Origin: Paramoeba atlantica
Taxonomy: Eukaryota; Protista; Discosea
NCBI GenBank assembly: GCA_977017575.1
Contig: CDRNVI010000164.1
Coordinates: 62,001 to 126,000 of the forward strand
Reading direction: 5' to 3'
DNA: 64,000 nucleotides
Of the stretch, positions 9,896 to 55,380 are shown in pieces (positions within the stretch are counted from its first letter, which is position 1; every line of letters starts with the position of its first letter). The position numbers and the translations under genes are program-made. Below the pieces are notes generated by a model. It saw nothing but the letters and a program-made list of their open reading frames with translations. It was not told the DNA's origin and made no database searches.

Positions 9896-11049
9896 TTAGG
9901 AGCTTTTGGCTGGTTTAATATCCACTCCCTTTTGTGAAATAAAAATAAAAAGTTTGAATAACATTTCAAGAAAATTGAAAAAGAAAATACATCAAAAGGA
10001 AAATAAGAGAAGAAAAGAGGGGAAAAAGTTCAAAGCAAACCCTTTCTTGAAATGTGGTGATCAATTCAACCACCTTTTGCTGGCCAGAAACTTTTGCAAT
10101 ATCCAAGGCTGTTCGACCACACTAGTAAAGAAAGTTCAAAAAAATGACCACATTACACACACTCCCCTCCAACAACAATAACAATTAAACAAGTCTAAAA
10201 AACTGCTCACAATAAAGTAACATCAAAGAAAATCAAAACTACTGTAAGATCAATGTTGGCTCCATGTTCAAGAAGAATTTCCACAATTTCTTCAAAACCA
10301 TTGTTAGCAGCAAATTGAAGAGCAGTCCATCCTTCCTTCACAAAAAGAAACAAAACAACAAATTATCACAACCAAAAATGAGAAAACAAATAAAAAAAGA
10401 AAAGAAAATCAACATCTTCTTGAAGATCAACATTGGATCCATGTTCAATCAGAATTTTGACAATTTCTTCATAACCTTCCAGAGTTGCAAAGTGAAGAGG
10501 AGTCCATCCATACTGATCAAAAGAAATTTTACAAAAGAACAAAATTATCGCATCACCTTCCTCCCACAACAACAGAACAATATCACAAATAACAAATGAG
10601 AAAACAAATATTAAAAAGAAAATCAAAACTTTATCTTGAAGATTTACATTGGGTCCATGTTCAATCAGAATTTTCACAGTTTCTACAAAACCTTTGGAGG
10701 CAGCATTGTGAAGAGCAGTCTGTTCAACTTTTTCTCTCCATGTTTGGCTCTCCTCCTGAACAAAAGAAGAAGTTATTATCATCCACAGAAATAAATCACA
10801 AAATTAAAAAACAAAGGAATGCAAAGAAAAATCAACTTCAAAAAAACAAAAAGAAAAAGAGGAGAGAAGAAGAAAAACAAAAGAAGAAAGAAGAAAGAAA
10901 GAAAAAAAACAATTTTTGAAAACCTTGTGTTTGAAGTCAATATCAAGTTGCTTGGATTGAAGAAGAACTTTGACAAGTTCTTCATCTCCTCTCTCAACAG
11001 CATCATAAAGTTTCTTGTTTTCTGATCTCTTCTCTTCTTCTTCTTCCAT
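9896..11049 (-). CDS. Ankyrin-repeat protein A (6 exons), ends GVDIKPAKSS*
   Basis: Exons read TALHNAASKG, YGWTPLHFA, EGWTALQFAANNG and CGRTALDIA. Phase-0 introns. Terminal exon 9896-9928. Confidence 0.85.
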
Positions 11050-11231
11050 CTTCTTTTTTTGTTTTCTTGATGATTTTGTGTTGGGGTGAGACAGAGAGAA
11101 AGAGCAAAAAGAGAAACAAAAACTAATTTCCTTTTTTAGTATTTCCTTTTGAGAAAAATTCCTTTTTTGTTCTAAACTTTTCTTTTTGGGTTTTTGGAGG
11201 AAGAGAGAGGAGAGGGAAGAGAGAGAGAGAG

Positions 11232-13487
11232 ATGCGTGTTTTCAGTGTGGTTGTTGTGGGAACACTCCTAATAACATTGGCCTCTTCAGATTTTGCTGAT
11301 TATCTCAACAATATAAGAAACTCAGCAAATGTCAATTCTCCCACGCTCGCAGAGTGTGGGGTGCTCTCCCACACCTTCGATGGACAAGAAGGTGGTGGTC
11401 TTGGACCTTGGACACTCAACAATCGCTCTCATGACCATATCTCATGTGCCTTGTGTAATCGAGTGAATGTTCCTTTTGGTGGTAATTCTGCTGGCATCAT
11501 TTTGAACGTGAAAAACAATCATTTCTTCTGTTACTATTCAGATGATGGGGGCACTGGGAATGCCAACTGGTGTCATCCTCCTGGACCAAGTTCCACTTGC
11601 GTCCCTGGATGCTCGACAATGATTGGAGAGAATTTCTGGCACCCAACATGGTGCACTGGATCGTGTTTTGGACATGGCCCATATTATCCAGATGACCTCC
11701 ACCGTTTCATGGAGGCAAATCTCCAAAGTATGAACAGTGAACTAATCATGGATCCAACTGTTTACATGGAAAATCTGTACAAACCAGCGCGAGAGAGCAG
11801 CCTTCTAGCTTTGTCGAATTGTAACCATGATTTGTGGCGAAAAGTAGAAGCTGATCTGGGCAGGAAAGTCCCATTAGTTAAATATGATAAGGAGAGAGGA
11901 GACCACCCATACAGCTGTATTGAGTGTCCAGAAGAATTTGATAATTTTGGAGAAGAGGAAGAAGAGGAAGAGGACGAGGACGAGGAAGAGGAAGAAGGAG
12001 AAACGCTCCCAACACTTTTGGGTCCGCTTGCGTTCGAAGAATGTAATTTCTCAGGGAGTGTGGTTCTTGATATGGAGGAAGTCCCTCTATTTTATACAAG
12101 TGCTTCTTGTTCTTGCTCTCTCTTTCTCTCTCATCTTGAAATGAGCGAACACACTGAGATGAGAGAACCGCCCTCTCAAATTGAAAATTGTTTAGTGTCA
12201 TTTCAGTTCATTTTTCTCTCTCTTTTCTCTCTTTTCACAAAATTCTTTTTTAACTCTTCAAAAATAGGGGTGAGAATGTTGAGACAACGAGTGTGATTTT
12301 TCCTACTGACGAACCTGTGATTCAAAGTAGTTGTTTGGGACTCCTTCAAGTTCTTTCTCTTTTTTTCTTCTTTCTTTTATTCTTTTCATTTTTTTCATTT
12401 TTTGAAATGTTGAAAAAAAAAGGAGAATGGTGTTGTGACAGGGTTTTGGTATTATGAGACTGCTTCAAAATGGGACATTCTCATTCAAACATATGAAAAC
12501 AACAAATTTTCCAAGCAACTTGAGTTTCACTCACTCTTTGACAACTTTTTGTCATTCAATTTTTATTCTCTTGCAGGTCTTTATTTTCCTTTCTTTCTTT
12601 TTGATTTGATTGATTTGTATGGTCTTTCAATTTTGAGATTAATTTAGTTTTTTCAAAACAGAGAACACAGACGGAAAAAAGAGTGCGCTGGTTTTCGGAA
12701 GTATCACCCATTTTAAGATTTGTCTCTCATTGGAAGCGAATGAGATGTTCACATTGGCAGCTTTTCAAGAAAACGATGGTGTTCAAAGCTTTCAAATGAA
12801 AAGTTATGAAAACCCTGTAATTCTTGCAGACGGTTCTCCACAACAAATAGTCGCTTTTTCTGTTCCCACAGGAGTACCTTATGCTCTCTCATGGAAACTC
12901 GATCCAGTGCAAAATTTCCCATCTCCTGCAGAAAGCGGGTTTGGTTTCTTTTTTATTATTTTTTTATTTCAAACCAACCCAACATCAAAATAGAAGAACA
13001 AGATAAAAAATGATTTACTTTTTTGATGTTTTTTAGATATAAAATGCAATCGATGGTATTTGGAATTGAGAATCAGGAAAAATATTTTTGTTTGGAAAGT
13101 AACACCCAAAAGAAAGGGAAAGTACAGTTGTTCTGGCCAGGAAATTCTGTTGCTGATGAAGTCTTTAATTTTTCTGGGAGTATGTTAAGTTTGACTACAA
13201 TAAGTGAAGGAGTTCGTTTGGTTTATCAAAGAGGGTCTTCGATTTGGTGTGTTGACTTGCCAGTTGCGTTTTTCGAGAAAACCAAGAATCCTATTCCAGT
13301 TCGATTGATAGCGAAAGTCAAAAAAAGTTTGAATGTAGTAACCACCCCAATTACCCAAAGCGAAGAGGGACTCATTGTGGTTCAATACAACGAGAAAGAA
13401 TATGGAGCAAAAGTTACCTCTTTTCAATCGTTACCACTCCAACCAGGAAAAGATCTCCCATCACCATCACCACCGCCGCGGGGGTAA
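11232..13487 (+). CDS. Secreted multi-domain protein, copy 1: signal peptide, Cys-rich N-domain, poly-Glu linker, beta-rich C-domain, Pro/Ser tail
   Basis: Signal-like MRVFSVVVVGTLLITLASS. ORFs 11232, 12435, 12730 and 13023 can be joined by GT-AG introns. Three conserved paralogues. Confidence 0.85.
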
Positions 13488-13679
13488 ATTCGAAAATACC
13501 GAAATCGCTCACTACAAACCGCCAACCACATGATTTCATTGAGAAAAAAAGCAACCAATGAGTGTTGTCAGAGCAAACAATAAATAATCAACAAAGGATT
13601 GATTTCAACTTTATTCTCTACATAATCTCAACATTCAATTTTCTTCTCAACCTCTCACTCTCTCTAGAGAGTTAAGTTT

Positions 13680-14987
13680 TCATTTTTTTTGAGCTGGTTT
13701 GATATTTTTGCCCTACAAAAATATTAAAAAAAAACAGTTAGGAGAAAGATTCAATCTTTTTTTTCAGTTTCTAAATTAAAATGAAGAGAAGAAAAAAGAA
13801 ATCAAACCCTTTCTTGAAATGTGTTGATTAACTCAACAATTCTTTTATCTCTTGTTGTTTCCAAGACTGTGTGACCACTCTAACAAAAAAGAAGTTCAAA
13901 AAAAAAAGAACTGCCCGCTCTCAGAACATATTCACACAAAAAAAATGAAAAAAAATGAAAAACAAGATTTCGGAGATGAATGTTTGGTCCATATTCAAGA
14001 AGAATTTTCACATCAGAACCATTCTTAATAGCAAGGTGAAGAGGAGTCTCTCCCCACTGAACAAAAAGTATTTTTCAATAAAAAGATAAAACAAATCACA
14101 CACAACCCATTGCAATCAACAAAAATAAGAAAAAATAAGAAAGAAAAACCAACAGAAAAGAAAAAAAATAGAAAACAAAGAAAGAAAAGAAAATCAAAAC
14201 TTCATCTTGAAGATCAATGTCAGATCCAGATTTAAGCAGAATTTTCAGAATTTCTTCAAAACCACTGTAAGCAGCAAAGTGAAGAGCAGTCTTCCCATAC
14301 TTTAACATAATGAATTTTTTTAAAAAAAAGGAAGAAAACAAATAGTTCCCATCTCAATAATTACAAAAACAAAAACTGAAAGAAAAACAAGCAAAAAAAA
14401 AAGAAAATCAAAACTACGTTTTGAAGATTAACATTGGATCCATATTCAACAAGAATTTGCACAATTTCTTGAAAACCTTCCAAAGCAGCGTTCTGAAGAG
14501 GAGTCCATCCACACTTAACAAAAAGAAGTTAAAAAAAAAGAACAAATCATCACATTATCTTCCCACAACAACAGAACAAGAACAAATAAAAATGAGAAAA
14601 CAAATATTAAAAGAGAATCAAAACTCTATCTTGAAGATTTACATTGGATCCATGTTCAATCAGAATTTTCACAACTTCTTCAAAACCTTTGGAAGCAGCT
14701 TTGTGAAGAGCAGTCTGTTCGTTCTGAACAAAAGAAGAAGTTATTATCACACACAACCATCAATCAATAAAAATAAAAAATGAAAAAACAATGAAAAATC
14801 AACTTCAAAAAAACAAAAGAAGAAGAAAGAGAAAAAGAAAAAAAACCAAGCCGCAGCCCTTGTGTTTGAAGTCAATATCAAGTTGCTTGGATTGAAGAAG
14901 AACTTTGACAAGTTCTTCATCTCCTCTCTCAACAGCATCGTAAAGTTTCTTGTTTTCTGATCTCTTCTCTTTTTCTTCTTCTTCCAT
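13680..14987 (-). CDS. Ankyrin-repeat protein B (7 exons), ends GKNIKPAQKK*
   Basis: Exons read EQTALHKAASKG, CGWTPLQNAA, YGKTALHFAA, SGETPLHLAI and SGHTVLET. Terminal exon 13680-13712. Confidence 0.85.
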
Positions 14988-15191
14988 CTTCTTTTTTTGT
15001 TTTCTTGATGATTTTGTGTTGTGGTGAGACAGAGAGAAAGAGCAAAAAGAGAAACAAAAAACTAATTTCCTTTTTTAGTATTTTCGTGATTCTTTTTTAG
15101 GAAAAATTCCTTTTTTGTTCTAAACTTTTCTTTTTGGGTTTTTGGAGTTTATCCCTCTCGAAGAGGAAGAGAGAGGAGAGGGAAGAGAGAG

Positions 15192-17494
15192 ATGCGTGTT
15201 TTCGAGGTGGTTGTTGTGGGAACACTCCTAATAACATTGGCCTCTTCAGATTTTGCTAATTATCTCAACAAAATAAGAAACTCAGCAAGTGTCAATTCTC
15301 CCACACTCACAGACGCTGGAGTCCTCACCCACACCTTCGATGGACAAGAAAATGGTGGCCATAAACCTTGGACAGTCAACAATCTCACAAATGACCATAT
15401 CTCATGTGCCTTGTGTAATCGAGTGAATGTTCCTTTTGGTGGCGGTTCTGCTGGCTTCATTTTGAACGTGAAAAACAATCATTTCTTCTGTTACTATGCC
15501 GATGATGGAGGAACTGGTTCTGACAACTGGTGTCATCCTCCTGGCCCAAGCTCTACTTGCATCCCTGGATGCTCGACATTAATGGGAAATAACGTGTGGT
15601 ACCCAGCATGGTGCACTGGATCATGTCAATCCAGAGGACCTTACAAACCAAAAGACCTCCGCCATTTCATGAAGGTAAATCTCCGTAGCATGAACAGTGA
15701 ACTGATCATGGATCCAACTGTGTACATGGAAAATCTGTACAAACCAGCGCGAGAGAGCAGCCTTCTAGCTTTGTCAAACTGTGACCGTAATTTGTGGCGA
15801 AAAGCAGAAGCTGATCTGGGCAGGAAAATCCCATTAGTTAGATACAATGGTGGAGACCACCCATACAGCTGTATTGAGTGTCCAAAAGAATTTGATAATT
15901 TTGGAGAAGAGGAAGAAGAAGAGGAAGAAGAAGAGGAAGAGGAAGAGGAAGAGGAAGAAGGAGAAACGCTCCCAACATTTTTGGGTCCGCTTGCGTTCGG
16001 AGAATGTAATTTCTCAGGGAGTGTCGTTCTTGATATGGAGGAAGTTCCTCTATTTTATACAAGTGCTTCTTGTTCTTGCTCCCTCTTTCTCTCTCATCTT
16101 GAAGTGAGCGAACACACTGAAACAAGAGAACCTTCCTCTCAAATTGAAAATTGTTTAGTGTCATTTCAGTTCATTTTTCTCTCTCTTTTCTCTCTTTTCT
16201 CCCTTTTCTCAAAATCGTTTTTTAATCTTCACAAACCTTTTTAACTCTTCAAAAATAGGGGTGAGAATGTTGAGACAACGAGTGTGATTTTTCCTACTGA
16301 CGAACCTGTGATTCAAAGCAGTTGTTTGGGACTCCTTCAAGTTCTTTTATTCTTTTTCTTCTTTCTTTTATTCTTTTTTTTGAAATGTTGAAAAAGGAGA
16401 ATGGTGTTGTGACAGGGTTTTGGTATTACGAGACTCCTTCAAAATGGGACATTCTCATTCAAACGTACGAAAACAACAAATTTTCCAAGCAACTTGAGTT
16501 TCACTCACTCTTCGACAACTTTTTGTCATTCAATTTTTATTCTCTTGCAGGTCTTTATTTTCCTTTCTTTCTTTTTTGATTTGATTGATTTGTATGGTCT
16601 TTCAATTTTGAGATTAATTTAGTTTTTCAAAACAGAGAACGCGGATGGGAAAAAGAGTGCACTGATTTTCGGAAACATCACTCATTTTAAAATTTGTCTC
16701 TCATTGGAAGCGAATGAGATGTTCACATTGGCAGCTTTTCAAGAAAACGATGGTGTTCAAAGCTTTCAAATGAAAAGTTATGAAAAATCTATCATTCTTG
16801 CAGACGGTTCTCCACAACAAATAGTCGCTTTTTCTGTTCCCAAAGGAATACTTCATGCTCTCTCATGGAAACTAGATCCAGTGCAAAATTTCTCATCTCC
16901 CACTGAAAGCGGGTTTGGTTTCTTTTTATTATTTTTTTGACAAAAATTTCAAACCAACCCAACATCAAAATAGAAGAAGAACAAGATAAAAAATGATTTA
17001 CTTTTTTGATGTTTTTTAGATATAAAATGCAATCGATGGTATTTGGAATTGAGAATCAGGAAAAATATTTTTGTTTGGAAAGTAACACCCAAAAGAAAGG
17101 GAAAGTGCAGTTGTTCTGGCCAAGAAATTCTGTTGCTGATGAAGTCTTTAATTTTTCTGGGAGTATGTTAAGTTTGACTGCAATAAGGGAAGGAGTTCGT
17201 TTGGTTTATCAAAGAGGGTATTCGATTTGGTGTGTTGACTTGCCAGTTGCGTTTTTCGAGAAAACCAAGAATCCTATTCCTGTTCGATTGATAGCGAAAG
17301 TCAAAAAAAGTTTGAATGTAGTAACCACCCCAATTACCCAAAATGAAGAAGAGGGATTCATTGTGGTTCAATACAACGAGAAAGAATATGGAGCAAAAGT
17401 TACCTCTTTTCAATCGTTACCACTCCAACCAGGAAAAAATCCCCCACCTTCACCATCACCATCACCATCACCATCACCATCACTGCTTGGGTAA
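15192..17494 (+). CDS. Secreted multi-domain protein, copy 2
   Basis: Paralogue of 11232..13487 with the same exon structure. Confidence 0.85.
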
Positions 17495-17743
17495 ATTCGA
17501 AAATACCGAAATCGCTCACTACAAACCGCCAACCACACGATTTCATTGAGAAAAAAAGCAAACAATGAGTGTTGTCAGAGCAAACAATAAATAATCAACA
17601 AAGGATTGATTTCAACTTTATTCTCTACATAATCTCAATGTTCAATTTTCTTTTTTTTTTTGATTCTTTTTATTGTTTGTGTACCCTCTTAATGCTCTGA
17701 AAGTTCTTTCCTCAACTCTCACTCTCTCCAGAGAGTTGAGTTT

Positions 17744-19121
17744 TCATTTTTTTTGAGCTGGTTTGATATTTTTGCCCTGCAAAAAAAATGGTAAAAAAAA
17801 AATAGGAGAAATTCAATCTTTTTTTTCTGGTTTCTAAATTAAAATGAAGAGAAGAAGAAAGAAATCAAACCCTTTCTTGAAATGTGTTGATTAATTCAGC
17901 AATTCTTTTATCTCTTTTCAGATCCAAGACTGTGTCACCACTCTAACAAAAAAGAAGTTCAAAAAAAAAGAACTACCCCCTCTCAAAACATATTCACACA
18001 AAAAAAAAATGAAAAAAAATGAAAAACCTGATTTTGGAGATGAATGTTTGGTCCATATTCAAGAAGAATTTTCATATTTTCTTCAAAACCATTCTTAATA
18101 GCAAGGTGAAGAGGAGTCTCTCCCCACTGAACAAAAAGTATTTTTCAATAAAAGGATAAAACAAATCACACACAACCCATTACAATCAACAAAAATAAGA
18201 AAAAATAAGAAAGAAAAACCAACAGCAAAGAAAAAATAGAAAACAAAGAAAGAAAAGAAAAGAAAACTTTATCTTGAAGATCAATGTCAGATCCAGATTC
18301 AATCAGAATTTTCAGAATTTCTTCAAAACCAGAGTAAGCAGCAAGGTGAAGAGCAGTCTTCCCATACTTAACAAAATGAAGTTTTAAAAAAAGAATAAAA
18401 CAAATCACACACAACCATCTCCCCATCACAATTAGAAAAACAAAAATTGAAAGAAAAACAAGCAAAAAGAAAGGAAAATCAAAAAACTTGGGTTAGAAGG
18501 TGAATGTTGGATCCATGTTCAAGAAGGATTTTCACAACTTCTTTTCTCCCTTTGTAAACAGCTCCGTGAAGAGGGGTCCATCCATACTAAATAAAATGAA
18601 GTTTTAAAAAAGAACAAATAACACACACATAACCATCTCTCTCTCTCACCCTCTCCATCACATGAGAAAATAAATAATAAAAAAAAGAAAATCAAAACTT
18701 GATTTTGAAGATCAACATTGGATCCATGTTCAATCAGAATTTTCACAATTTGTTCAAAACCTTTGGAGGCAGCATTGTGAAGAGCAGTCTGTTCAACTTT
18801 TTCTCTCCATGTTTGGCTCTCCTCCTGAACAAAAGAAGAAGTTATTATCACCCACAGAAATAAATCACAAAATAAAAAAACAAAGGAGTGCAATGAAAAA
18901 TCAACTTCAAAAAAACAAAAAGAAAAAGAGGAGAGAAGAAGAAAAACAAAAGAAGAAAGAAGAAGAAAGAAAAAAAAACAATTTTTGAAAACCTTGTGTT
19001 CGAAGTCACTATTAAGTTGCTTGGAGTGAAGAAGAACTTTGACAAGTTCTTCATCTCCTCTCTCAACAGCATCATAAAGTTTCTCATTTTCTGATCTCTT
19101 CTCTTCTTCTTCTTCTTCCAT
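17744..19121 (-). CDS. Ankyrin-repeat protein C (7 exons), ends GKNIKPAQKK*
   Basis: Exons read EQTALHNAASKG, YGWTPLHGAVYKG, YGKTALHLAA, SGETPLHLAI and SGDTVLDL. Terminal exon 17744-17776. Confidence 0.85.
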
Positions 19122-19330
19122 CTTCTTTTCTTGTTTTCTTGATGATTGTGTGTTGTGGTGAGACAGAGAGAAAGAGCAAAAAGAGAAACAAAAACTAATT
19201 TCCTTTTTTAGTATTTCCTTTTGAGAAAAATTCCTTTTTTGTCAAAAACTTTTCTTTTTGGGTTTCTGGTTTTTTGGGTTTTTGGAGCCCATCAGACAAG
19301 GAAGAGAGAGGAGAGGGAAGAGAGAGAGGG

Positions 19331-20053
19331 ATGCGTGTTTTCAGTGTGGTTGTTGTGGGAACACTCCTAATAACATTGGCCTCTTCAGATTTTGCTAATT
19401 ATCTCAACAAAATAAGAAACTCAGCAAGTGTCAATTCTCCCACACTCACAGACGCTGGAGTCCTCACCCACACCTTCGATGGACAAGAAAATAGTGGCCG
19501 TAAAGCATGGACAGTCAACAATCTCTCAAATGACCATATCTCATGTGCCCTGAGCAATCGAGTGAATATCCCTTTTGGTTACAATTCTCCTGGTTTTATT
19601 TTGAACGTGAAAAACAATCATTTCTTCTGTTACTATGCCGATGATGGAGGAACTGGTTCTGGGAACTGGTGTCATCCTCCCGGACCAAGCTCTACTTGCG
19701 TCCCTGGATGCTCAACATTAATGGGAAATAACGTGTGGTACCCAGCATGGTGCACTGGATCATGTCATTCCAAAGGACCTTACAAACCTAAAGACCTCCA
19801 CCGTTTCCTGAAGGTCAATTTCAAAAGTATTCCCAGCGAACTGATCATGGATCCAACTGTGTACATGGAAAATCTGTACAAACCAGCGCGAGAGAGCAGC
19901 CTTCTAGCTTTGTCAAACTGTGACCGTAATTTGTGGCGAAAAGCAGAAGCTGATCTGGGCAGGAAACTCCCTTTAGTTCGATATGATGGGGGGAATGCAA
20001 ACCGCCCATACAGCTGTATTGAGTGTCCAAAAGAATTTGATAATTTTGGAGAA

Positions 20054-20088
<35 letters not shown>

Positions 20089-21606
20089 GGAAGAGGAAGA
20101 GGAAGAGGAAGAAGGAGAAACGTTACCAACACTTTTGGGTCCGCTCGCGTTGGGGGAATGTAATTTCTCAGGGAGTGTGGTGATTGATCAGGAGGAAGTT
20201 CCTCTATTTTATACAAGTGCTTCTTGTTCTTGCTCTCTCTTTCTCTCTCATCTTGAAGTGAGCGAACACACTGAAACAAGAGAACCTTCCTCTCAAATTG
20301 AAAATTGTTTAGTGTCATTTCAGTTCATTTTTCTCTCTCTTTTCTCTCTTTTCACAAAATTCTTTTTTAACTCTTCAAAAATAGGGGTGAGAATGTTGAG
20401 ACAGCGAGTGTGATTTTTCCTACTGACGAACCTGTGATTCAAAGTAGTTGTTTGGGACTCCTTCAAGTTCTTTCTCTTTTTTTCTTCTTTCTTTTATTCT
20501 TTTCATTTTTTTCATTTTTTGAAATGTTGAAAAAAAAAGGAGAATGGTGTTGTGACAGGGTTTTGGTATTATGAGACTGCTTCAAAATGGGACATTCTCA
20601 TTCAAACATATGAAAACAACAAATTTTCCAAGCAACTTGAGTTTCACTCACTCTTTGACAACTTTTTGTCATTCAATTTTTATTCTCTTGCAGGTCTTTA
20701 TTTTCCTTTCTTTCTTTTTGATTTGATTGATTTGTATGGTCTTTCAATTTTGAGATTAATTTAGTTTTTTCAAAACAGAGAACGCGGATGGGAAAAAGAG
20801 TGCACTGATTTTCGGAAGTATCACCCATTTTAAAATTTGTCTCTCATTGGAAGCGAATGAGATGTTCACATTGGCAGCTTTTCAAGAAAACGATGGTGTT
20901 CAAAGCTTTCAAATGAAAAGTTATGAAAACCCTGTAATTCTTGCAGACGGTTCTCCACAACAAATAGTCGCTTTTTCTGTTCCCAAAGGAATACTTCATG
21001 CTCTCTCATGGAAACTAGATCCAGTGCAAAATTTCCCATCTCCTGCGGAAAGCGGGTTTTGTTTCTTTTTATTATTTTTTTTTATTGCAAGCCTAGAGAA
21101 GAAGAACAAAAAAATGATTTACTTTTTTGATGTTTTTTAGATATAAAATGCAATCGATGGTATTTGGAATTGAGAATCAGGAAAAATATTTTTGTTTGGA
21201 AAGTAACACCCAAAAGAAAGGGAAAGTGCAGTTGTTCTGGCCAGGAAATTCTGTTGCTGATGAAGTCTTTAATTTTTCTGGGAGTATGTTAAGTTTGACT
21301 GCAATAAGTGAAGGAGTTCGTTTGGTTTATCAAAGAGGGTATTCAATTTGGTGTGTTGACTTGCCAGTTGCGTTTTTCGAGAAAACCAAGAATCCTCTTC
21401 CCATTCGATTGATAGCGAAAGTCAAAAAAAGTTTGAATGTAGTAACCACCCCAATTACCCAAAACGAAGAGGGATTCATTGTGGTTCAGTACAAGAATGA
21501 ACATGGAGCAAAAGTTACCTCTTTTCAATTGTTACCACTCCAACCAGGAAAAAATCCCCCATCTCCAAGTCCACCATCACCTTCATCACCATCACTGCTT
21601 GGGTAA
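19331..21606 (+). CDS. Secreted multi-domain protein, copy 3
   Basis: Paralogue; ATG at 19331 within ORF 19274..20413. Confidence 0.85.
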
Positions 21607-21839
21607 ATTCGAAAATACCAAAATCGCTCACCACAACCACCTACTTCGTTGAGAAAAAAGCAACAAGAATATTGTTCTCATTGTGGCAATAAATTAACCA
21701 AATAATTAACAAATCATTGGTCAGAATAAAATCCAAACATGTTGAAAAGAGAGGAGATGAGGAAATAACGAAAAGTAAAACTGATTTCTCCAGAAAAAAA
21801 AATAATTTGGAACTTTTCCTTTATTTGAAATGATGATAT

Positions 21840-24829: not shown

Positions 24830-25090
24830 TCTTCTTTTGTTCTTTCTCTCTTTCTCTTCTCTCTTTCCCAAAAGCAAAACACAAAAAAAACAGAGACGGT
24901 CAAAAAGCGTTTCTCGAAAAAAAAAAATAGGACTCTAAAATAAATAAAAGTTTCTAAATCAATTTCTAACTCTTTTGCATTTTTCCAAAAGGACGAAGAA
25001 CGAATTTGATTTTCTTCGAATATTTGAGTTTCGCTTTTTCCGCTTCTTTTCTTTCTGTTTGGTTTTTCTTTTGGTTTTTTTGGTTTGAGG

Positions 25091-25802: not shown

Positions 25803-25833
<31 letters not shown>

Positions 25834-35378: not shown

Positions 35379-35839
35379 CTCTCTCTCTCTTTTCTCTTTC
35401 TCTTTTCTCTTTCTCTTTTTTCTCTTTCTCTTTCTTTCTCTTCTTCCTTTCTCTTCCTCCTTTTCTCTTTCTCTTCCGTTTTTCTCAGATGCGCCGAAAA
35501 ACCAAAAACAAAAAAGGAGAAGAGGGACACCAACAAAAAGGTGTCCCTTTATTTTTTTTTTTTTTTTGGTGTCCTTTTCTTTTTTTGGTGTCCTTTTTTC
35601 TTTTTCTTTTTTGTTTTTTGTTTGCCGAAAGTCTCACAAGCAAAAGGTTTTCTGTTGTTTGTGGCAAACAAATCGAACGATGGTTTTCGCAAGGGGGTTG
35701 CGAGATTGTTTTCATTCGTTCTCCAAATCAAATCAAATTTTCCCGACTTGAAAGTCAATCCAAACGCAAACTTTTCTATCTGGCTGATTGATACAGATCG
35801 AACTTTTTCCCACCACACACACACAAAAAGAAAAACGAA

Positions 35840-36520: not shown

Positions 36521-36694
36521 ATAATTAATGACCTTTGTTTTTTCTTTTATCTTTTTGGTAAATAAATCTCTTTTTCAATTATTTTTTTAAGTTTTAATCA
36601 ATTATTTTTTTTGTGAAAACAAATCTTTATTTTATTCAAAAAAGAATAATGAAAAAAAAAAAAATTGAAAAAAGAATTTTCTCTTCTGTTCTTT

Positions 36695-37965
36695 TTAAAC
36701 AGGAACTTCACCACGACAAGTAACTCGTTGCATCCTCCTCACAGTATCAGCCCCATCACCAATGGCAATATGCTGACAAATTCTATTATCCCAAACAGCA
36801 ACAGAACCAGGCATCCATCTAAATCGACATTGTACTTCAGGTCGATTGGGCAAAGAGGTCAAATACCGAAGAAAATCAGCACTCTCAGCCTCTGTCATCC
36901 CATCAAACCGAAGAGTAAACATCTCATTCACAAAGAGAGCTTTCTTCCCAGAATAAGGATGTGTTCGAATGACTGGATGTGAATTTTCAGCATAAAGAGA
37001 TTCTGATTCCATGTACTTCATTTTGGCATCACCACTTTCAAAATTCTCGAGTCTTTGTCCCTCGACACTGTAAGCTCGAGCTGCTGAGTGAATTGCACGA
37101 AGGTTTCCCAACATTTCTTTTAATCCATCAGACATTCGATCGTAAATTAAATGCATTCCAGCCCAAACTGTATTTAAAGGTACGAGGGAGAGTTAATTTA
37201 ATGAGATGAGAAAGAGAGAACAAAAAGAAAAAGAAAATAAAAACCTGTGTCATTTCCTACAGGAGGAACTTCTCGACCCACAAGAATTGATTCCCCTGAT
37301 GGTGACGATTGGAAAGAGTTGTCACTGTGCCATACCTCTCCAAATCTTGAAAAAAGAAGAAGAAGATCAGTTTCAAACCAAGAGAAGAGAAAGGGGAGAC
37401 GGATATCCAAAAAAAAATAAAAAACCTTGTTGGTTCAGATGGTTCTTTAATGATTTCCATAACTTCTGGATTCTCTGGAAGTCCTTTTACAATTGGATGG
37501 ATTTCCTGAAGAGAGAGAGAGAAAAATTTAAGTTTGTTTGGATGGAAAACTCAAAAAAAAAAGGGTGGTTCAAACCGGTTCACCAATGAAACCAGCAAAA
37601 CGGACATGATCATCTTGAGAAAGATCTTGGTCTCGAAAAAAAATCACCCCATACCTGATTGAAAAGATTAGATCGTGAACGAACAGATTGTGTATCATTT
37701 CGGATCACAAGTGATCGACACAAAAAAAAAAGAAAAAAGAAAAAAGAAAGAGAAAAAACTGGAATAAGGCTTCGCGAATCTTCGCTGCATTAGACTCAGA
37801 AACATTCTTCAAGTCAACTCCGTGTAACTCAGCGCCAATCGAGTAAGTAAGAGGTTTCACTTCAAAAGGCCAATCGCGCGAAACAGAAAAAGATCTTCGC
37901 CCAACCAAAGAAGTTGTTGTTTTTCGAAAAAAGGTTGTTGAAACAGAAAAAGCGCTTTTTAGCAT
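36695..37965 (-). CDS. TauD/TfdA-family Fe(II)/2-oxoglutarate dioxygenase with mitochondrial-presequence-like N-terminus
   Basis: IGAELHGVDL, WHSD, HPVIRTHP..G.KALFVN, VWDNR..QH and RRMQRVT motifs; about 5 exons. Confidence 0.9.
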
Positions 37966-38493
37966 TCCTTTGTAGGCGGAGAGAGAGAGAGAGGATATAT
38001 TCGAGAAAAAGTCTGGTCGACAAAAAAGAAAAAACAAAGATCGAGTCGAGTGACAAAAAGAAAAAGAGAAAAGGAAAAAGGACGAGAAGAAGAGTTCCGC
38101 GGTTTCTCCAAAAGGAAAAAAGTCGCTCTTGTTTTTAAAAATAGCGCCCTAAATTTTGTTGAAAAAGTTTTTGACTTTTCTCTCCCTCAATACCAGAAAT
38201 ATCAGACCGGAAAAGAAAAAAGAGAAACTCAAAAAGAATCTCCAAACTTGTTCTTCTCCCTTTTTGATTTTTTTTTTTGATTTTTCTCTCCCAATCCAAC
38301 AAACAGAATTGGAAAAGAAAAGAGTTTTTTTTTTGGAGAAAACACAAAAATATTCTCCAACTCAGTCTTCTCCCTCTTTTTGATTTTTTTTGAATTTGGT
38401 CTTTTGGGATTTATTTGAATTTTTTTTTGTGTTCTTTTTTTTTGGTTGATTTGATATTTTTTTTGTGGATTTTGTGTGGGTAATATCTTAAAT

Positions 38494-40422: not shown

Positions 40423-40748
40423 TTTTGAAAGAGAGAGAGAGAGTGTTTCTTTCTTTCTTTCTTTCCTTTTCTTTTTTTTTCTTTCCCCAAAAAAAAAACA
40501 ACACCAAAACGCCAAAAAGAAAGAAAAAGAAAAGAACGGTTGATTTTTTATATTTTATCTATTATTATTTTTACTAATATAAAATAAATAAAAATGCTTT
40601 ACTACTTTTATTTAAGGGAGTAAATATTTCTTTTGCCGATTTTGATTTTTTTTTTTTGTGAGAGACTGTTTTTTTGTTTCTTTTTTGTCTTCTTTTGTTC
40701 CCAGAACATTTTTTGGATCATCTCTTCTCTTTTTCCTCTTTCCCAAGA

Positions 40749-41056
40749 ATGACTGAACAAATCGTAATCGAAGGAAAACGCTTCAATCAACCCGAACATG
40801 ATTGCCAGAAAGATAAAAATGATGGTCCTTGTATCGGAGAAGGATGTCGAAAATCTCACTTCCAAGAAGTTTGTAATGTTTGCGGAATTTCTTATGGTCA
40901 ACATAGTGGACATAAATGTCCTGTTGGAAATACAACAGGACATTTTAGTGGACGTTTGTCTTTCTTGTTCTTTTTAAGTTTTTTTTTCGATTCTTTTTCA
41001 CGAATTCTTTTTTTTGAACTTCAGATGCAAATATCAAACCAGCGAAACGAGGTTAA
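40749..41056 (+). CDS. Small (~79 aa) Cys/His-rich putative zinc-binding protein, ends HANIKPAKRG*
   Basis: ATG at 40749. HDC..C..C..H..CNVC..H..HKC pattern. Phase-1 intron to terminal exon 41025-41056. Confidence 0.65.
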
Positions 41057-41172
41057 ACGAATACCAAAGAACGCAAAGGTGAAAGGAAAAACATTCTGTT
41101 TGTTTGAAGAAACCCAACAGAATTTTCAAGAAAAACAGTTCATCCACAAAACTCTTTTATTTCAATTTTTCT

Positions 41173-43802
41173 TTAAAAAGGGGCGTACCAAGCGACAATA
41201 TCGAAAACCATCAAGTTTGATGTGGCATAAGGATTGGCAAACACTCCAAAGACAATGGTGTGATCTAAAAAAAATGTTTAGAAACAAAAAAAGAAGAAAA
41301 GAAGTGAATAAGGAAAAGTCAATTTAAAAAACAAGAAAAAGAAAAGAAAAGAAAAGAAAAGGAAGAATGAAAAAGACCAGAAAAATCAGCAGTGATATCA
41401 ATTTGATGAAGAGGAGAGTCAGCAGCTCGTTCAACAGCATCATATGAAGTCAAAGATGGAGAGTCTTTTGCACTCGCAAAGAGCCACAAACTTCCAACAG
41501 TATTTTTCTCACGAATTGCCACAGTTAAACCAATTGACTTTGGTACATCAATGGAGAAATAAGTCCAGCTGTGGATGGAAACTGCTTGATCTCTCACAAG
41601 AACACCACTGAAAAAAAAAAAAAAGGAATTGGTGAAAGATTCAAATAAACCACAAACCACAAAAAGAACACAAAGAGAAAAAAAATATAAATAACAACAA
41701 AACAAAAACAAAACAAAAAACAAACTTTTCAAGAGCCTTGATGGGGACATTACAATCATCACCACCCCATCCACTTTGACAAACACAAACACTGTTGCCT
41801 CCTATACAAGAACCATGAGAATTTGGAGTACAAGCACAATTTGCTGCTTCGCTGATTGACATGGTGTATTGACAATCTTTGAATCCGTAAACTCCAATAT
41901 GCCTTTTGAGAAAGAGAAACAGTTGGTTGGTTAGGAACATGAAAAAGAAAGAAAAAAAGAAAACCAATGGGGGTGACAAAACAAAATCGAGACAATTATT
42001 ATAAAGAAACATGAATTAAAAGTATTACCAGGTTCCTCGATCAGGAGATGGAATAGTAAGATAAGAGTTTGTAAGGTTTGAGTTATCATAATAGAGATAG
42101 TTGAAAAAGTTGGGTGGGTTCCCTTTGTTAACATACACATCACAATCTGCGTCTTCGTTCGTCTACAATAATAAAAAATGAGTTTATTCTTCTTTTTCAA
42201 AATCTAAAAGAAAAAAGAAAGGAGGAGGGATAACAAACTTGTTGAAGAGAAATTACAGCATTAGTCACGGTATCAAGATTAATAAAGTAATAGTTCCAAG
42301 CACCTTCTCCAGCAAAACTACATATCAAAAAAAAAGAGAAAGAAAAGGGTAAGAGGATCTCTTCTTTGGATATCTTCTAGAAAGAAAAAATGTACCCAGA
42401 AGTTGGATCTTCAAAAGTGAGAGCACTATCTTGATGTTCACAAGATGGCCCAGAGAAGTCGGTGTTACATGAACAAGATCCGCTTTGACATTGTCCTAAA
42501 ATCAAAAAAAAAATATTCAGTCAACCAATTGAAAGGATCAAGATTTGTGGTTATGGTTTTGTTTTGTTTTGGTGTGGGAAGGGGGAGGGGACTTCAAAAA
42601 CAAAATGATTAACCATGGTTTGAACACTGATTCGGACAATTGTCATCTGCAATAATTGTTGCGATCATCCAATAAGAGGATGTTTCACGAGCATGAATAC
42701 CAATAAAGTATTCAGTGTTTCCTCGAGGCTAAAAAAAAAAATAAACGATTTTTTAATCAAATCCATCAAAAAAGAGAGAGGGTAAACAAAAAAAAGAAAG
42801 AAAGAAAGAAAAACACAAAAAAGACAACAGAAATTCTTTCTTTTTACCTGAGAAAGAATAATTCTCATAACTGTATCCTCACCACCAGGAGGAGTGCGAT
42901 AATCATAATCACGAAGAGTAGGAATTCGACCAGCAGCAAGATACATATCAGCTTCATTGGTATCTTCACCCTCTCCATCCAAATGAAGTTCAAATCTCAG
43001 TTTATTGGGGCGATCAGTGACTTTCATACTAAAGTATTCCCACCCTTCCACATTAACTCGGAAGTTTTGTTGACCAGATGGAGTGAGTTGGTATCGAAGG
43101 GCACATCTTTCCCCAGTAAACCCCTCAAAGCAAGAGCACTCATCAGATCCACCAAGACACTCTCCACTTAAAATGCTATCACATTGGCATGCTGATCCAA
43201 CTGTGTATTGGAAAGTATAATCACAACCCATATAGCCGTGAACGCCAAAGAAATAGGATCCCTCTAACCAAAGAAAAGAATTGGTTGGTTCAAAATTCCC
43301 CAAAATCTTTTGAAAAGATTTCCGAAAAAGAAAAAAAAAAAGACAAAAAGACAAAACCAGCAGCGAATGACAATTGACTTTGGACATTCATCGAGAAATC
43401 ACGGTAAAGGTAATCTTCAAATGTTGGGAAAGTTGCTTGCCTGACATAGAAGTCCAAATCACAAAACCCCTCTCCTGCTTGTTTCAGGGTTGCGGTGAGG
43501 ATCCCAGATTCTTCAAAGAAAAAAAAAAGGTTTTAGAGATTCAACAAGGAAGAAGAAGAAGAAAAAAAAGATTTGTGAAGAAAGTTAAAATGAATTCAAA
43601 AAGATATACCAAGGATGTTGACGTAGTAGTAACGCCATTTGCCAGAATCGACGTTACCATGATAGAGTTGGTCTGGTCTTGTAAGTTGACTGAAAATTGT
43701 ACAGTCAGAACCCGTCCAATTGTCTTCACATACTTGTTGGCCGCTAAGAGTAACAGAAAACAGACAAAGAAAGAACACAAAAAGAAAACTAGTCTTCTCC
43801 AT
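41173..43802 (-). CDS. Secreted EGF-like repeat protein, paralogue of 21840..24829
   Basis: Signal MEKTSFLFVFFLCLFSVTLSG. EGF motifs CEDNWTGSDC, CSCFEGFTGERC and CVCQSGWGGDDC. Same module order and a C-terminal VAWYAPF*. Confidence 0.8.
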
Positions 43803-44111
43803 CTTCTCTTTTTTAAATGATCTTTTCTTTCCCTTCTTCTCTTCTCCTTCTTTCTCTCTTTTCCACAAAACAACAAACGAAAAAAAAAGAAAACAAGAGA
43901 CGGAGCGTTTGTTTTAATTCATATTCGAAAAGACTCAGATCGATTTTTTTGAACGTTTAATAAATATTATATTTTTGACAACAATCGGTTTTCAATATTA
44001 TATTAAAAATACATATAAATAATTATTTTATAAAAAATAAAAAAGAGGTAACTCCTTTCGAAAAAAGGTAACAAAAGGGTTTTTTTTTTTCTCTCTTTTC
44101 TCTTTTTCTTG

Positions 44112-45851
44112 ATGGCTGATGGATCTTTTGGGGAAATTGAACAACGATTGAAATCTCTCGAAACTTCATTTGAACAAATTTACCAATGTAAACCCGCCTG
44201 GATTAGTATCGCTCCTGGGAGGGTGAATTTGATTGGAGAACATATTGATTACAGTGACTTTGGGGTTCTTCCGATGGCAATTGAACATTCTTCCATGATG
44301 GCCTTCTTGGTTGTCGAGGAAAAAGAAAGTAAGGAGGAAGTCTCCTCCTCCAATTCTTTTGGGAGAAAAATCTTTATTCATAACAAAGATGATCGTTTCC
44401 CTTCAACCGAAGTCGAGATCCCATCTTCAACAACAACAACAACAACACAAACCCCATCATCAGGAGACGGAAACGACGGAAAGACAAACAATACATATGG
44501 AGTGAAGTTCAATCGCAAAAAACGATCATGGCATCAATTCTTCCTAGCTGGATATGTTGGTGTTCTCCAAAATTTGGCCCCTGAGTTGGGGAATCTTGAT
44601 CCAGCTCAAAGAGATCGATTATTATTTGGAGGGAAAGGAGAGAAGTGGTTTCTGTTTGTGGAAGGAAATGTTCCAGTTGGATCTGGTCTTGCTTCTTCCT
44701 CAGCACTTGTTTGTGCATCTTCTCTTCTGGTATGGTATTTTCTCATTTTTCATGTCCTTTTCTTTTGAAAATTTGTTCCGATTATTTGTCTCTTCTCATT
44801 TTCTGAGAAATAATAGACAATGCACGCACTTAGAACGCTGAAGAGTTGCCCTTCTTCTTGGAAAGGGTTCACAAAACTTCAGTTGGGATCGATCACAGCC
44901 AAATGCGAACAATATGTTGGTGCTGAATCTGGAGGAATGGATCAAGCGATCAGTCTTCTAGGAGAACAAGGAATAGCTAAAATGATTGAGTTTAATCCCT
45001 TGCGATCAACTGATGTGAGAATGCCTTCGTGTTCATCATTTGTCTTGGCAAACAGTTTAAAAGAACATTCAGTCGCGGATTCCCATTACAATCTTAGAGT
45101 TTTTGAATGTCGGTTGGCGGTTAATATCCTAGCAAAGTACCTCCTCCTTGCAAAAAAAGAGGAAGATCAATTGCCATCATCTTCTCCTTCTTCTCCGCCA
45201 CCATCCCGGTGGAAAACAATGCGAGAATTGGCCATTCATATGAACTTAAATACCGAAGAAGGTCTAAATGAAATGGCCAGTCTTGCATCAACTTATTTGA
45301 AGGAAGGTTCTTACAGAATTGAAGAGGCTGCAGCGGAACTGAATATGCCTATTGATTCTCTTGTGGAGACTTATTCGCCTCATTTCCACCCGGACGAAGG
45401 GGTCGAGTTAGAGTTGCGATTGCGGGCAAAACATGTCTTTTCAGAAGCTTCACGAGTTTTTCAATTTAAAAGAGCTTGTGATGAGTGTCAAAAGGGAGAG
45501 ATGAGTGAGGAAGTTTGTATGGAAAAACTTGGAGAACTCATGAAACAAAGTCATGAAAGTTGTCGTGACTTTTATGATTGTAGTTGTGATGAATTGAATC
45601 GATTAGTTGCAATTAGTGAGAGTCTTGGGGCGAGAGGAGCCAGACTTACAGGAGCTGGATGGGGAGGGTGGGGTGTTATTTTAGTTTCAGAAGAAAAAGC
45701 AAAACAATTTATCAACTCTCTCACTGATGAGTACTTGCTTCCTTCAGGTGTTTCACCTGAAGAAGTTTCAAAGAATGTTGTTTGGTCAAAGCCAAGTGCA
45801 GGTGCGCGACTCTACAATGTTCGATCTCAAGAGTGGGTTTTGTTATTATAA
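44112..45851 (+). CDS. GALK: Galactokinase / N-acetylgalactosamine kinase (GHMP family)
   Basis: APGRVNLIGEHIDY; GSGLASSSA; GGMDQAIS; HVFSEASRV; GARLTGAGWGG; one intron. Confidence 0.93.
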
Positions 45852-45939
45852 AAGAGAGATAGACGAGAAAATTGAAAAATAATAAATCACAATAAAAAAA
45901 AATTATATCATATTCTTCTCAGGCTTCAGTTAGAGAAAA

Positions 45940-47839
45940 TTAATCAGAAACACTATCAGAAGAGACAATGATCCCACCAGAATTCTGCTGTTTGGAGAGC
46001 GACTCGTGGTCCAATCCAGAACCCCCAAAAAGCCACATATTTGATGAACGTTTCTTTTCAATCTCAACATACCCATCACCTCTCCTTTTCTCTTGATGAT
46101 CCGTTATCCAAAGGATTAAAGCAGACCCTGATCCAACAATAATCACGACAGACATACACAAATGACCCAAGACAAACGATTCTGTTACTCCTGTTGAAAG
46201 AAGATCGTCTCCATCTTCTTCTTTCACTGTCAATCCATAAAGATTGGGACCAACAATTCCCCCCAGATTTCCAATTGAGATAAGAAATGCAGTGCCAACA
46301 GCACGTTCTGATGTTGGTTTCGATTTATAGGTGCTTGAAAACCATGCTAAGATTGGTGGCATACTGTTGGAATAAAAAAAAAGGAGAAGGGAAAAAGAGA
46401 ATTTTTTTTTAATAAGAAAATATGAAATTATTTTAGCAAGGACAAAAAAGAAAAGTAAACCTTGACTGAATCCCAGCATTTGCAATCATAACACTGATGA
46501 TTGACAACGTATTAATCTCATAATTCGCCGAAAAAGTGAGAGTCACAAACGCAAAACCACAAACACATGTAGTTATAAAAGTAAACATTCCATGATCTCC
46601 TGTCTTATCAGAAAAATAAGACACCACAAGAATCGCAATGGTGGTCAAAGTATAAGAAGGAACAGTCATTAAATTTGCTCCCAATTCATCAAATCCCATC
46701 TCAGTTAAGAGAGTTGGGAGATAAAATCCAAGGGAATAGGCGACTGTAACCTGACAAAAATAAAGAAAAGAAAAAGCCCAGGTTCGTTTCGAAGAAAGGA
46801 CAAGAATGAGAGCTTCTTTTGTACTACTTCCCATTTTCTCAAGGGATGGTTGCAATCTTGTTGTTGCCAACTCTTTTTCATCAGGTGAAAGCCAAGAAGA
46901 TTTCTCTGGACGATCCGGGAGAAAGAAGAAAGCTACCACTCCAACAATCATGGAAGCAACTCCTTCAATTAAGAAAAGCCATTGCCATCCATCAAGCCAC
47001 CAATCAATTCGAAGAACACCATAGGCAATTAAACCTCCAACTGCTCCTGCTACTGCTGATGCTGAGTACATGTATGCGATACGAGAAGTATATTCGCTCC
47101 CCTGAGGTTTGGAAAGTAAAAATAATGAGAAAAAAGAAGGAAAAAAGAAGTAAAAAGAAAACCCTTTTCCCCTCAAATCTTTTTGCCCTTGGTAATGAAA
47201 CAAAAGAAGATAGATTACCTTATACCAATAGTTTGTTAAATAGAAGACGAGACCAGGAAACAATCCAGCTTCTGCGACACCAAGAAAGAAACGAACAATA
47301 ATTAGATCAACAAATGATTTGACAAAGATTGTTGCAGCGGAGATTAACCCAAAGAAAAAAACCAAAGATCCAATCCACCTATTGTTTTTTTTTTTTTAAA
47401 TGGTTCAATCAAAAAAAAGTTGAAAGAAGAAGAAGAAGAAGAAGAAGAGAGAAGAGAGAAGAAATTCTCTGAAAGAACAAAAAAACTGAGGAGAGATCCC
47501 CAAAGAATTAAAAACGGACAATGAGGGGGAAAAGAGAAAAAGAAAAAGAAATATTGAATACCAGGAAGGCCTCGTCTTCTTCAAAGCAACATTCGAAGGA
47601 ATCTCCATCAAAATATAACCAACAAAAAAGATCGCAACAGCAAAAGAAAACTCCCACTCTTTCAAACCAAGAGCAGAAACCAAATCATCATGTACATTCC
47701 CAACATTAATTCGATCAAGATATGCCACAAAGTACAACACAAATGATGCTGGGATGATGTGCCGATCGATTTTGGAGAGGAGATTCTTTTCATCTGTGGG
47801 GATTGATTGGTTTTTCCCTCCTTCTTCTTCGTCTTCCAT
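45940..47839 (-). CDS. MFS transporter, allantoate/nicotinate permease (ACS) family
   Basis: KIDRHIIP, YLDRINVGN, FFVGYILMEIPSN, RFFLGVAEAGLFPG, GWQWLFLIEG and IGNLGGIVGP; multiple TM segments. Confidence 0.9.
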
Positions 47840-48116
47840 CTTTTAGAGATTCAAAAAGAAAGACGGAAAAGGAAGAAAAAGATGAAAGAAGAAGAAGAGA
47901 AGAAGAAGGGAAAAAAGAATCTCGCACCGCGAAAAAAGAAACCCAGAAAACTCTGCGAAGGAAAACAACCGTTTTTATCTATAAATAATAATTTTTATTT
48001 CGGAAACAACTGTTTTTGACTATAAATAGAAAAGAGGGTTTTTCGTTTCTTTTTTTCTGCTTTTTGTTGGTTCATTTTTTTGGGGATTAATTTTAATTTT
48101 GGAGTGAGAAAAAGAG

Positions 48117-48580
48117 ATGGATTCCATCACCGTCTCTGGAGGATTTGTGGAAAAAACTGATGATCGATATGAATCAACGTGTGATGGAGTCTATGTAATC
48201 CAAAAAGATTTATACAACAAGAAACATTACTTTCGTCGATGTGAAGAAGGAAAGATTGTTCCAGGTTCGATCTATTGCGATGATAGGACAGATAAATGTC
48301 TTTATTGGAAGATTTGGCGATCAGGAAAGGGGAAAAATGATGGAGGCTGGAATTTTAGTCAAGTTCCTGATGACCCTGATTCTCCCTTTCCTCCTTTTGG
48401 TGTCTGGGTGAAAGAGAAAGCCTCAAAGGATGATTCTCTTGGTGGAAATAACTATGAGAATTTGGAAGTCCAATTTTCGGTTCTTTCTTTCTTTTCAAAA
48501 ATTCATTCTTTTGAGTTTTCTCTCTCATGTCGAACAAAAAAACACAGGGCACGGATTTAAAACCAGCTAAAAGATCATAA
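48117..48580 (+). CDS. Small Trp/Gly-rich domain protein (~131 aa), ends GTDLKPAKRS*
   Basis: ATG at 48117. Phase-0 intron after QFS; terminal exon 48548-48580. A tandem paralogue is present. Confidence 0.7.
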
Positions 48581-48710
48581 TCAATTGTTTTTTGGTTTTT
48601 CTGGGAATGGCATGTCTGACTCTTTCCCTGTAAAGGTGGAAAACAAATTGATTTTTTTCTCTTTTTTTTGGTTTTCCAGTCGAATTCTTTTCTCTTTCTG
48701 TTGTCAAGAA

Positions 48711-49132
48711 ATGGGCGCCATCGTTGTTTCTGGAGGTTTTCTGGAAAAAAATAGTGATCCATATGAATCGACATGTGATGGAGTGTATTTCATCCAAGAA
48801 GATTTGTTGGCCAATAAACATCACTTTCGTCGATGTGAAGAAGGAAAGATTGTTCCAGGTTCAATCTATTGGGATGGCCGTCTTTATTGGAAGATTTGGT
48901 CATGAAAAGGCAATGATGGTTGGAATTTTAGTCAAGTTTCTGATGACCCTGATTCCCTTTTCCCTCCTATTGGTCAATGGGTGAAAGGGAAAGCTGTGGA
49001 TGATGAATATTTTAGTGAACATTACGATGAGATTGGTTATCCATTTTTTTTTTTTTAAATTCAATTCTTCTTTGAGTTTCTTCTCAGAGATAAAAACAGG
49101 TCACGGATGTAAAGCCAGCCAAAAAATCATAA
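48711..49132 (+). pseudogene. Tandem paralogue of 48117 with in-frame TGA (48903-48905); terminal exon VTDVKPAKKS*
   Basis: Collinear with copy 1 on both sides of the stop. The splice phase to the terminal exon does not fit cleanly. Confidence 0.6.
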
Positions 49133-55368: not shown

Positions 55369-55380
55369 CTCCCCCTATTC
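55369..55380 (-). other. Polypurine tract GAATAGGGGGAG of the gag-only element
   Basis: Immediately precedes the 3' LTR on the minus strand. Confidence 0.8.

Follow-up and report, generated by a model that had tools for sequence, protein, structure and literature searches.

A selected C-terminal KPA peptide shared by unrelated protein families of the amoeba Paramoeba atlantica, a candidate docking motif

Peroxisomal targeting signal type 1 (PTS1), KDEL and the dilysine signal are C-terminal sorting peptides that are read with the free carboxylate. The known portable end-signals (PTS1, KDEL, CaaX and KKxx) each led to a receptor and a pathway, and new ones are rare. Other C-terminal elements have been described. 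ASB proteins end in a SOCS box and poxvirus ankyrin proteins in PRANC/F-box-like elements, which are folded domains of 40-60 residues. The C-degrons of the DesCEND (destruction via C-end degrons) type are endings such as -GG, -RG, Arg at -3 and -A. Host-to-endosymbiont extensions are also known, namely the chromatophore transit peptide (crTP) of Paulinella and the C-terminal UCYN-A transit peptide (uTP). They exceed 100 residues, are partly structured, and their targeting was shown by proteomics. Here, another C-terminal element is described from a 64-kb stretch of the Paramoeba atlantica genome (GenBank assembly GCA_977017575.1, contig CDRNVI010000164.1, positions 62,001 to 126,000, hereafter the window). 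It is a peptide tag with the core aliphatic-K-P-A-[K/R/Q], followed by one to six mostly basic residues and the stop. The tag is a selected, spliced C-terminal peptide common to unrelated protein families, and it may serve as a docking motif.

The original prediction had listed six terminal micro-exons ending in KPA[KQ]xx-stop in the window, and all six read at those coordinates with the lengths and phases given (Table 1). An AG acceptor lies immediately 5' of each, and the last introns before them are T-rich and 68-112 nt long. A GT donor follows the upstream exon in ankyrin A (10041), ankyrin B (13808), ankyrin C (17871), the Cys/His mini-protein D (40953) and gene E (48479). Ankyrins A to C are paralogues of one another, as are E and F, so that the window holds three independent tagged families, as had been claimed. 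In the three ankyrin genes, with about one repeat per exon, the penultimate exon ends in ...TFQER, the donor reads AGG/GTTTG and the acceptor AG. Ankyrins B and C share a tag exon that is 100% identical, and the intron before it is 87% identical. F is a decayed paralogue of E. Its sole obvious GT donor would put the tag out of frame, so the earlier description of its phase as unclear was fair. The tag exon of F is intact, which suggests that the decay is recent; its single in-frame TGA is found in both haplotypes. The other genes of the window (galactokinase, MFS transporter, TauD, TRIM-NHL, copia) have no KPA near their stops, in keeping with the prediction.

A seventh KPAKxx-stop peptide, MKPAKRT, had been missed by the prediction. 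It was rejected as a tag, since it lacks an acceptor and corresponds to the opposite strand of the ...RFAGFIGEPV exon in a TauD-family gene. It is therefore most likely due to chance. The gene in question is a multi-exon TauD/TfdA-family dioxygenase gene, whose conserved FAGF motif yields the spurious peptide on the other strand.

Table 1. Tag exons, their genes and other features of the window (positions in the 64-kb window; a hyphen between residues and "stop" marks the end of the reading frame)
Feature	Position	Strand	Details
Ankyrin A terminal micro-exon, GVDIKPAKSS-stop	9896-9928	-	Intron 9929-10040 (112 nt), previous exon ends 10041; AG acceptor, GT donor, phase 0
Ankyrin A gene	9896-11049	-	About six exons, about one ankyrin repeat per exon, ATG at 11049; Pfam Ank families on P0003
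Ankyrin B terminal micro-exon, GKNIKPAQKK-stop	13680-13712	-	Intron 13713-13807 (95 nt), phase 0; gene 13680-14987
Ankyrin C terminal micro-exon, GKNIKPAQKK-stop	17744-17776	-	Intron 17777-17870 (94 nt), phase 0; gene 17744-19121
Cys/His mini-protein D, exon 1	40749-40953	+	68 codons + 1 base, GT donor at 40954
D terminal micro-exon, (H)ANIKPAKRG-stop	41025-41056	+	32 nt, phase 1, after 71-nt intron
Gene E, exon 1	48117-48479	+	121 codons, uncharacterised beta-rich domain
E terminal micro-exon, GTDLKPAKRS-stop	48548-48580	+	After 68-nt intron; usage backed by transcript protein
F, decayed paralogue of E	48711-49132	+	In-frame TGA 48903-48905; tag exon 49100-49132 (VTDVKPAKKS-stop) still open; P0037 is a 64-residue shortened open reading frame
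MKPAKRT-stop, most likely chance	37586-37609	+	No acceptor; antisense to TauD-family exon
TauD/TfdA-family dioxygenase gene	36698-38100	-	Multi-exon
Open reading frames of about 350 residues	11232-12296, 15192-16244, 19274-20413		No Pfam family; head-to-head with the tagged ankyrin genes
Triplicated pair (ankyrin gene and open reading frame)	9896-21606
A/G-rich low-complexity run	9829-9867		Downstream of the ankyrin A stop
Long terminal repeat (LTR) element	55192-57301		Absent from L001

Chance is excluded as the origin of the tag. In 300 dinucleotide-preserving shuffles of the 64 kb, read in six frames, KPA[KQ] is expected 0.74 times (observed 7), KPA[KQ]xx-stop 0.05 times (observed 7) and the strict motif 0.003 times (observed 6). 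The motif is thus commoner than composition predicts, as the original prediction required. Every KPA[KQ] in the window (7/7) lies exactly two codons before a stop. When paralogues are counted once, three families are still far beyond chance.

The relatives of E point to selection on the peptide itself. An exhaustive HMMER search with P0001, the transcript protein of E, returned 36 relatives with the E domain. Of these, six carry the terminal tag, at identities of 35-41%: P0040 (TIKPAKRK), P0041 (NVKPAKR), P0043 (FLKPAKK), P0044 (RVKPARRIY), P0047 (SVKPAKRKD) and P0059 (TVKPAKR). The seven tagged E-family proteins align with a mean pairwise identity of 34% (range 21-50%), and only 15 of the 105 ungapped columns are invariant; the K, P and A of the tag make up three of these. 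Such invariance at this level of divergence argues for selection on the peptide. The flanking tag positions show conservative swaps only (I/L/V; K/R/Q), which arise by first-base substitutions. The Ala of the tag uses all four codons (GCT/GCC/GCG/GCA), the Lys AAA and AAG, and the Ile ATT, ATC and ATA. The Pro codon is CCA in 21 and CCT in 2 of 23 tags. Between E and F, the micro-exon is 85% identical, the intron 68% and the 3' flank 37%; the tag flanks of different families have no DNA similarity. Drifting flanks and introns, synonymous variation and conservative swaps together support a constraint on the peptide rather than on a DNA cassette, and the proposal of a portable, peptide-level C-terminal tag is borne out.

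The tag exon is spliced into transcripts of E and of one paralogue. For E, the 131-residue transcriptome protein P0001 (MMETSP) corresponds to exon 1 fused directly to GTDLKPAKRS. The one residue at which it differs from the window is that encoded by L001, a second haplotype or assembly of this locus (~99% identical). For the paralogue, which lies outside the window, the genomic open reading frame P0071 (L011) reads ...EFDE, 30 intron codons and GSRVKPARRIY-stop, and the transcript protein P0044 lacks exactly these 30 intron-coded residues. Two blocks of the cDNA contig L012 match the genomic L011 at 100% identity, and an intron of ~87 nt (GT...AG) directly before GSRVKPARRIY-stop is skipped between them. 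In general, contigs of the transcriptome match the genome at 99-100% identity. The expectation that transcripts use these exons thus holds for E and the paralogue, but protein searches gave no transcript match for the ankyrins or D. In ankyrins A to C and D, use of the exon is predicted from the canonical splice sites and from the open tag exon kept among many paralogues.

More of the genome was covered with ten further loci (~150 kb) from the European Nucleotide Archive assembly ERZ24900291, in which the locus of the window recurs at ~99% identity. These loci hold 18 further tags. Eleven belong to ankyrin genes with a terminal micro-exon; nine of them read G[RQ]TIKPA[QR]... plus four to six further residues, e.g., GRTIKPAQQTKKEN before the stop, and the remaining two read STNIKPAKKKEN and GAKYQKPAKKKREN, each followed by a stop. 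The extra genomic copies of the E family end in ...VSVKPAKRKD, ...VSVKPAKQKD, ...CTVKPAKR, ...CQIKPAKD and GSRVKPARRIY, each before a stop. An additional family on the minus strand of L009 has the terminal micro-exon KEEEMAVIKPAKRN, likewise followed by a stop. In the eighteenth tag, ...AIIKPAKK is followed by an A-run and a TGA out of frame. Its exon, VAPNAIIKPAKK (L009 ~10680-10720, minus strand), has an AG acceptor 5', and the TGA is shifted by one base from the reading frame, probably because the long-read assembly has a wrong homopolymer length or because a frameshift arose very recently. One ankyrin paralogue (L002 ~16700-16800, plus strand) has lost the tag, its terminal exon reading GER-stop-KQLNQQKKK where its siblings have GRTIKPAQQTKKEN.

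In 199.6 kb, 23 of the 24 occurrences of [ILVMQ]KPA[KRQ] in any frame lie within eight codons of a stop, the antisense MKPAKRT being one of the 23. The lone exception is ...AIIKPAKK, which looks like a homopolymer frameshift. Two features of the original prediction have to be relaxed outside the window. KPA was thought to be fixed at positions -6 to -4; this is true of the six copies in the window, but across 24 tails two, three, four, five, six or seven residues follow KPA. Likewise, the tag usually has a terminal micro-exon of its own but does not depend on one, as at least three tagged E-family copies are intronless, continuous open reading frames (P0047, L009 10001-10378; P0059, L010 3378-3821; L010 4163-4606). 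Where an intron is present, it lies exactly four codons before the Lys in all ankyrins and two E-family genes, 3 2/3 codons before it in D and eight in the L009 family. Old exon shuffling could account for this regularity, and so could a preferred insertion site 5' of a Gly codon.

The tag is carried by at least four unrelated families, i.e., the ankyrins, the E domain, the Cys/His protein D and the L009 family. The ankyrin carriers have Pfam Ank families, on P0003 and its paralogues. The E domain matches no Pfam family. Its AlphaFold model is beta-rich, with a predicted local distance difference test (pLDDT) score of 89.7 and a predicted template modelling score of 0.83. The tail (residues 122-131) has a pLDDT of ~70 and no secondary structure, and the model thus suggests that the tag is an exposed, flexible tail behind the E domain. 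Searches with the fold gave no convincing match in the PDB with Foldseek (E-value at least 1) or in a wide VIA-align search (best Z 4.8). In the ESM Atlas, template modelling scores reached 0.60, and the matches were only unnamed or EF-hand-containing protist proteins. E represents a widespread protist domain with the consensus ...CNGxY...GAIYFDG..WKIC..G.G..E.GWNFSQ.P....PP.G.W...DYS.L (alignment A1). Its relatives outside the tagged set have no tag, so the tag appears to be a lineage-specific addition. In these relatives the domain is N-terminal or internal in larger proteins, together with MIB_HERC2 and ZZ, HEAT repeats, or ZU5-UPA-Death. D is the weakest of the three tagged families in the window; a feature search of the Atlas gave only weak zinc-finger-like leads for it. 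The tagged proteins of the window have no obvious signal peptide or membrane span, and no hydrophobic leader is present at the N-termini of A, D and E.

How does the tag compare with the described end-signals? The 24 tails were matched by regular expressions for PTS1, KDEL, CaaX, KKxx/KxKxx, PDZ ligands of classes I and II, EEVD, nuclear localisation signals, SUMO sites, KEN, C-degrons and 14-3-3 mode III. No pattern fits more than six of the 24 tails, and most fit none. PTS1 ([SAC][KRH][LM] or the relaxed set, as quoted in PMC5601477), KDEL/HDEL (-[DE]EL plus signal peptide), CaaX (Cys at -4, then two aliphatic residues), PDZ ligands (last residue hydrophobic, position -2 [ST] or hydrophobic) and terminal EEVD each fit 0/24, which upholds the exclusion of PTS1, CaaX, KDEL and EEVD in the original prediction. 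Strict KKxx/KxKxx, a signal of type I membrane proteins, fits 5/24 tails, all of them outside the window. The core puts Lys at -6 and -3 and the carriers have no transmembrane segment; the tag is not a dilysine signal, and the five fits are an accident of the basic tail. Like PTS1 (-SKL), KDEL/HDEL and the dilysine signal, the tag is very short, stands at the extreme C-terminus of unrelated proteins and is portable. In contrast, its sequence fits none of them, two to seven residues follow KPA, and its carriers have no signal peptide or membrane span. The SOCS box and PRANC offer another parallel, in that a small C-terminal element couples ankyrin recognition modules to a common machine. The tag differs from them in being a core of about five residues in a tail of about ten, without a BC-box or F-box pattern, and in being found on non-ankyrin domains as well. 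Full-text literature searches on the motif strings and on Paramoeba/Neoparamoeba gave no description of the motif. A six-term text search of the 2017 Paramoeba pemaquidensis genome paper gave standard targeting predictions and no such signal.

With its invariant core Phi-KPA-[KRQ] (Phi, aliphatic), a tail that is unstructured in the model and at least four unrelated carrier families, the tag fits the description of a generic short linear motif in a disordered tail, i.e., a core of 3-10 residues in a flexible region that stays conserved as its flanks drift and recurs in unrelated proteins. The favoured reading, considered to have an about even chance of being correct, is that the tag is a real, lineage-specific docking motif of this type at the C-terminus, with one common reader and an adaptor-type role for small recognition modules. 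The tail would hang flexibly behind small, soluble, single-domain binding proteins (ankyrins, the E domain, the Cys/His protein D and at least one more family). A common reader protein would bind it and so couple many unrelated recognition modules to the same machinery; a cytosolic adaptor or a scaffold of the ubiquitin-ligase type would be the favoured kind of reader. The extreme C-terminal place may owe as much to the route of acquisition as to a need for a free carboxylate. It may reflect acquisition as a 3' exon, because an added 3' exon spares the domain and the register varies.

Several points weigh against this reading. The docking function is a prediction from sequence. Because the register varies, a receptor that holds the free carboxylate, as those of PTS1, KDEL and PDZ ligands do, is unlikely. 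The protein search with ankyrin A gave only unspliced genomic open reading frames of paralogues and no transcript match. The search with D gave neither a homologue nor a transcript, and D has no Pfam family and a low-confidence model (pLDDT 48). P0040 and P0043 are labelled Paramoeba atlantica and may be paralogues in the species of the window rather than orthologues elsewhere. Metagenome scans yielded no relative, and the evidence for the tag may come from one species only. The extra loci were chosen via ankyrin and E-family matches, which skews both the density of tags and the family list toward these two. Lastly, the CCA bias of the Pro codon leaves some room for nucleotide-level constraint.

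Other explanations have been considered. The tag may be a basic C-terminal import or retention signal, either a nuclear or nucleolar localisation signal of an unconventional kind or a polybasic stretch with affinity for nucleic acid or membrane. The tail is exposed in the model, and Lys and Arg make up 57% of the residues after KPA in the 24 tails, with hardly any hydrophobic residues, all of which would suit such a signal. The invariant part, however, is Phi-K-P-A and not a basic cluster. The monopartite nuclear localisation pattern K[KR]x[KR] occurs in only 2/24 tails, and ankyrin A, ending in KPAKSS, has a single basic residue after the core. Such a signal is regarded as unlikely.

A C-terminal degron is slightly less likely again. 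An E3 ligase would read the tail and give fast-evolving accessory proteins a short half-life, and the conserved Lys may act as the acceptor. The tag shares with C-degrons its C-terminal place and its short linear form, but its last residues are not conserved and its register to the end varies. Any one DesCEND pattern (-GG, -RG/-KG/-QG, R at -3, -A, -EE) fits at most 3/24 tails; KEN also occurs in 3/24, only in the tail of one ankyrin subfamily. In favour of a degron, the tagged genes belong to lineage-specific families with tandem duplicates, of which many are in decay (F; the L002 copy). TRIM-like E3 genes adjoin E and F, whereas other E-family loci have no TRIM neighbour.

Alternatively, Phi-K-P-A may be an enzyme site, at which the Lys is methylated or acylated, the Pro hydroxylated or the basic tail trimmed by an endoprotease. 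An invariant Lys-Pro beside an aliphatic residue resembles enzyme recognition motifs, and the residues after the core vary as if they were dispensable. Nevertheless, the SUMO consensus (Psi-K-x-[DE]) fits 0/24 tails and no enzyme candidate is at hand, and this proposal is considered improbable.

Marginally more doubtful is an address label for a lineage-specific compartment. These amoebae carry a Perkinsela-like kinetoplastid endosymbiont, whose surface or interior could be reached by host recognition proteins along an undescribed delivery route. To date, this amoeba lineage is the only one in which the tag is known, and C-terminal host-to-symbiont signals are known elsewhere, such as the uTP of UCYN-A. 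Like crTP and uTP, the tag is a lineage-specific addition to many unrelated host proteins of an endosymbiont-bearing organism. Unlike these far longer extensions, it has about ten residues, and the text search of the 2017 genome paper turned up no such signal. If true, it would be the first host-to-symbiont targeting signal in a non-plastid symbiosis of one eukaryote within another.

Very improbable, finally, is that the peptide has no function and marks a spread DNA or RNA element, either an mRNA motif, AAACCAGC, or a mobile 3' cassette that supplies acceptor, stop and polyadenylation site. In its favour, base composition predicts ~4.5 copies of the 8-mer AAACCAGC in 214.5 kb and 29 are present, almost every tag has CCA as its Pro codon, and the exon starts at a constant distance from the Lys in the ankyrins and two E-family genes. 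Against it, 20 of the 29 copies are in-frame tags, which account for the whole excess, and the other nine exceed the expectation by little. Four tags have AAACCTGC or AAGCCAGC instead, and the amino-acid replacements are conservative and come about through first-base changes. A mobile cassette was rejected since the flanks are unrelated and intronless tagged copies exist.

Some observations concern the surroundings of the tagged genes. Each tagged ankyrin gene of the window stands head-to-head with an open reading frame of about 350 residues without a Pfam family, and the pair is triplicated. All three of these reading frames contain an internal YKPAR, which is not a tag. An A/G-rich low-complexity run lies downstream of the ankyrin A stop. 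Outside the window, two tandem, apparently intronless EF-1alpha-like genes (480 and 456 residues; L005 9880-13077) adjoin tagged ankyrin genes. The LTR element of the window is absent from L001, which is otherwise 97-99% identical; position 55191 is followed directly by 57302 in the alignment. The insertion is thus indicated to be polymorphic between haplotypes or assemblies, and hence young.

For genome annotation, the tag has a practical consequence. Gene callers that miss terminal exons of 33 nt will shorten or mis-extend dozens of genes in this genome. The 10-residue tail is also a handle for finding a putative reader, and it gives a simple rule for listing the tagged repertoire from the proteome. 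The tag links unrelated, rapidly duplicating families of binding domains in a lineage of amoebae, fish pathogens among them, that harbours a eukaryotic endosymbiont.

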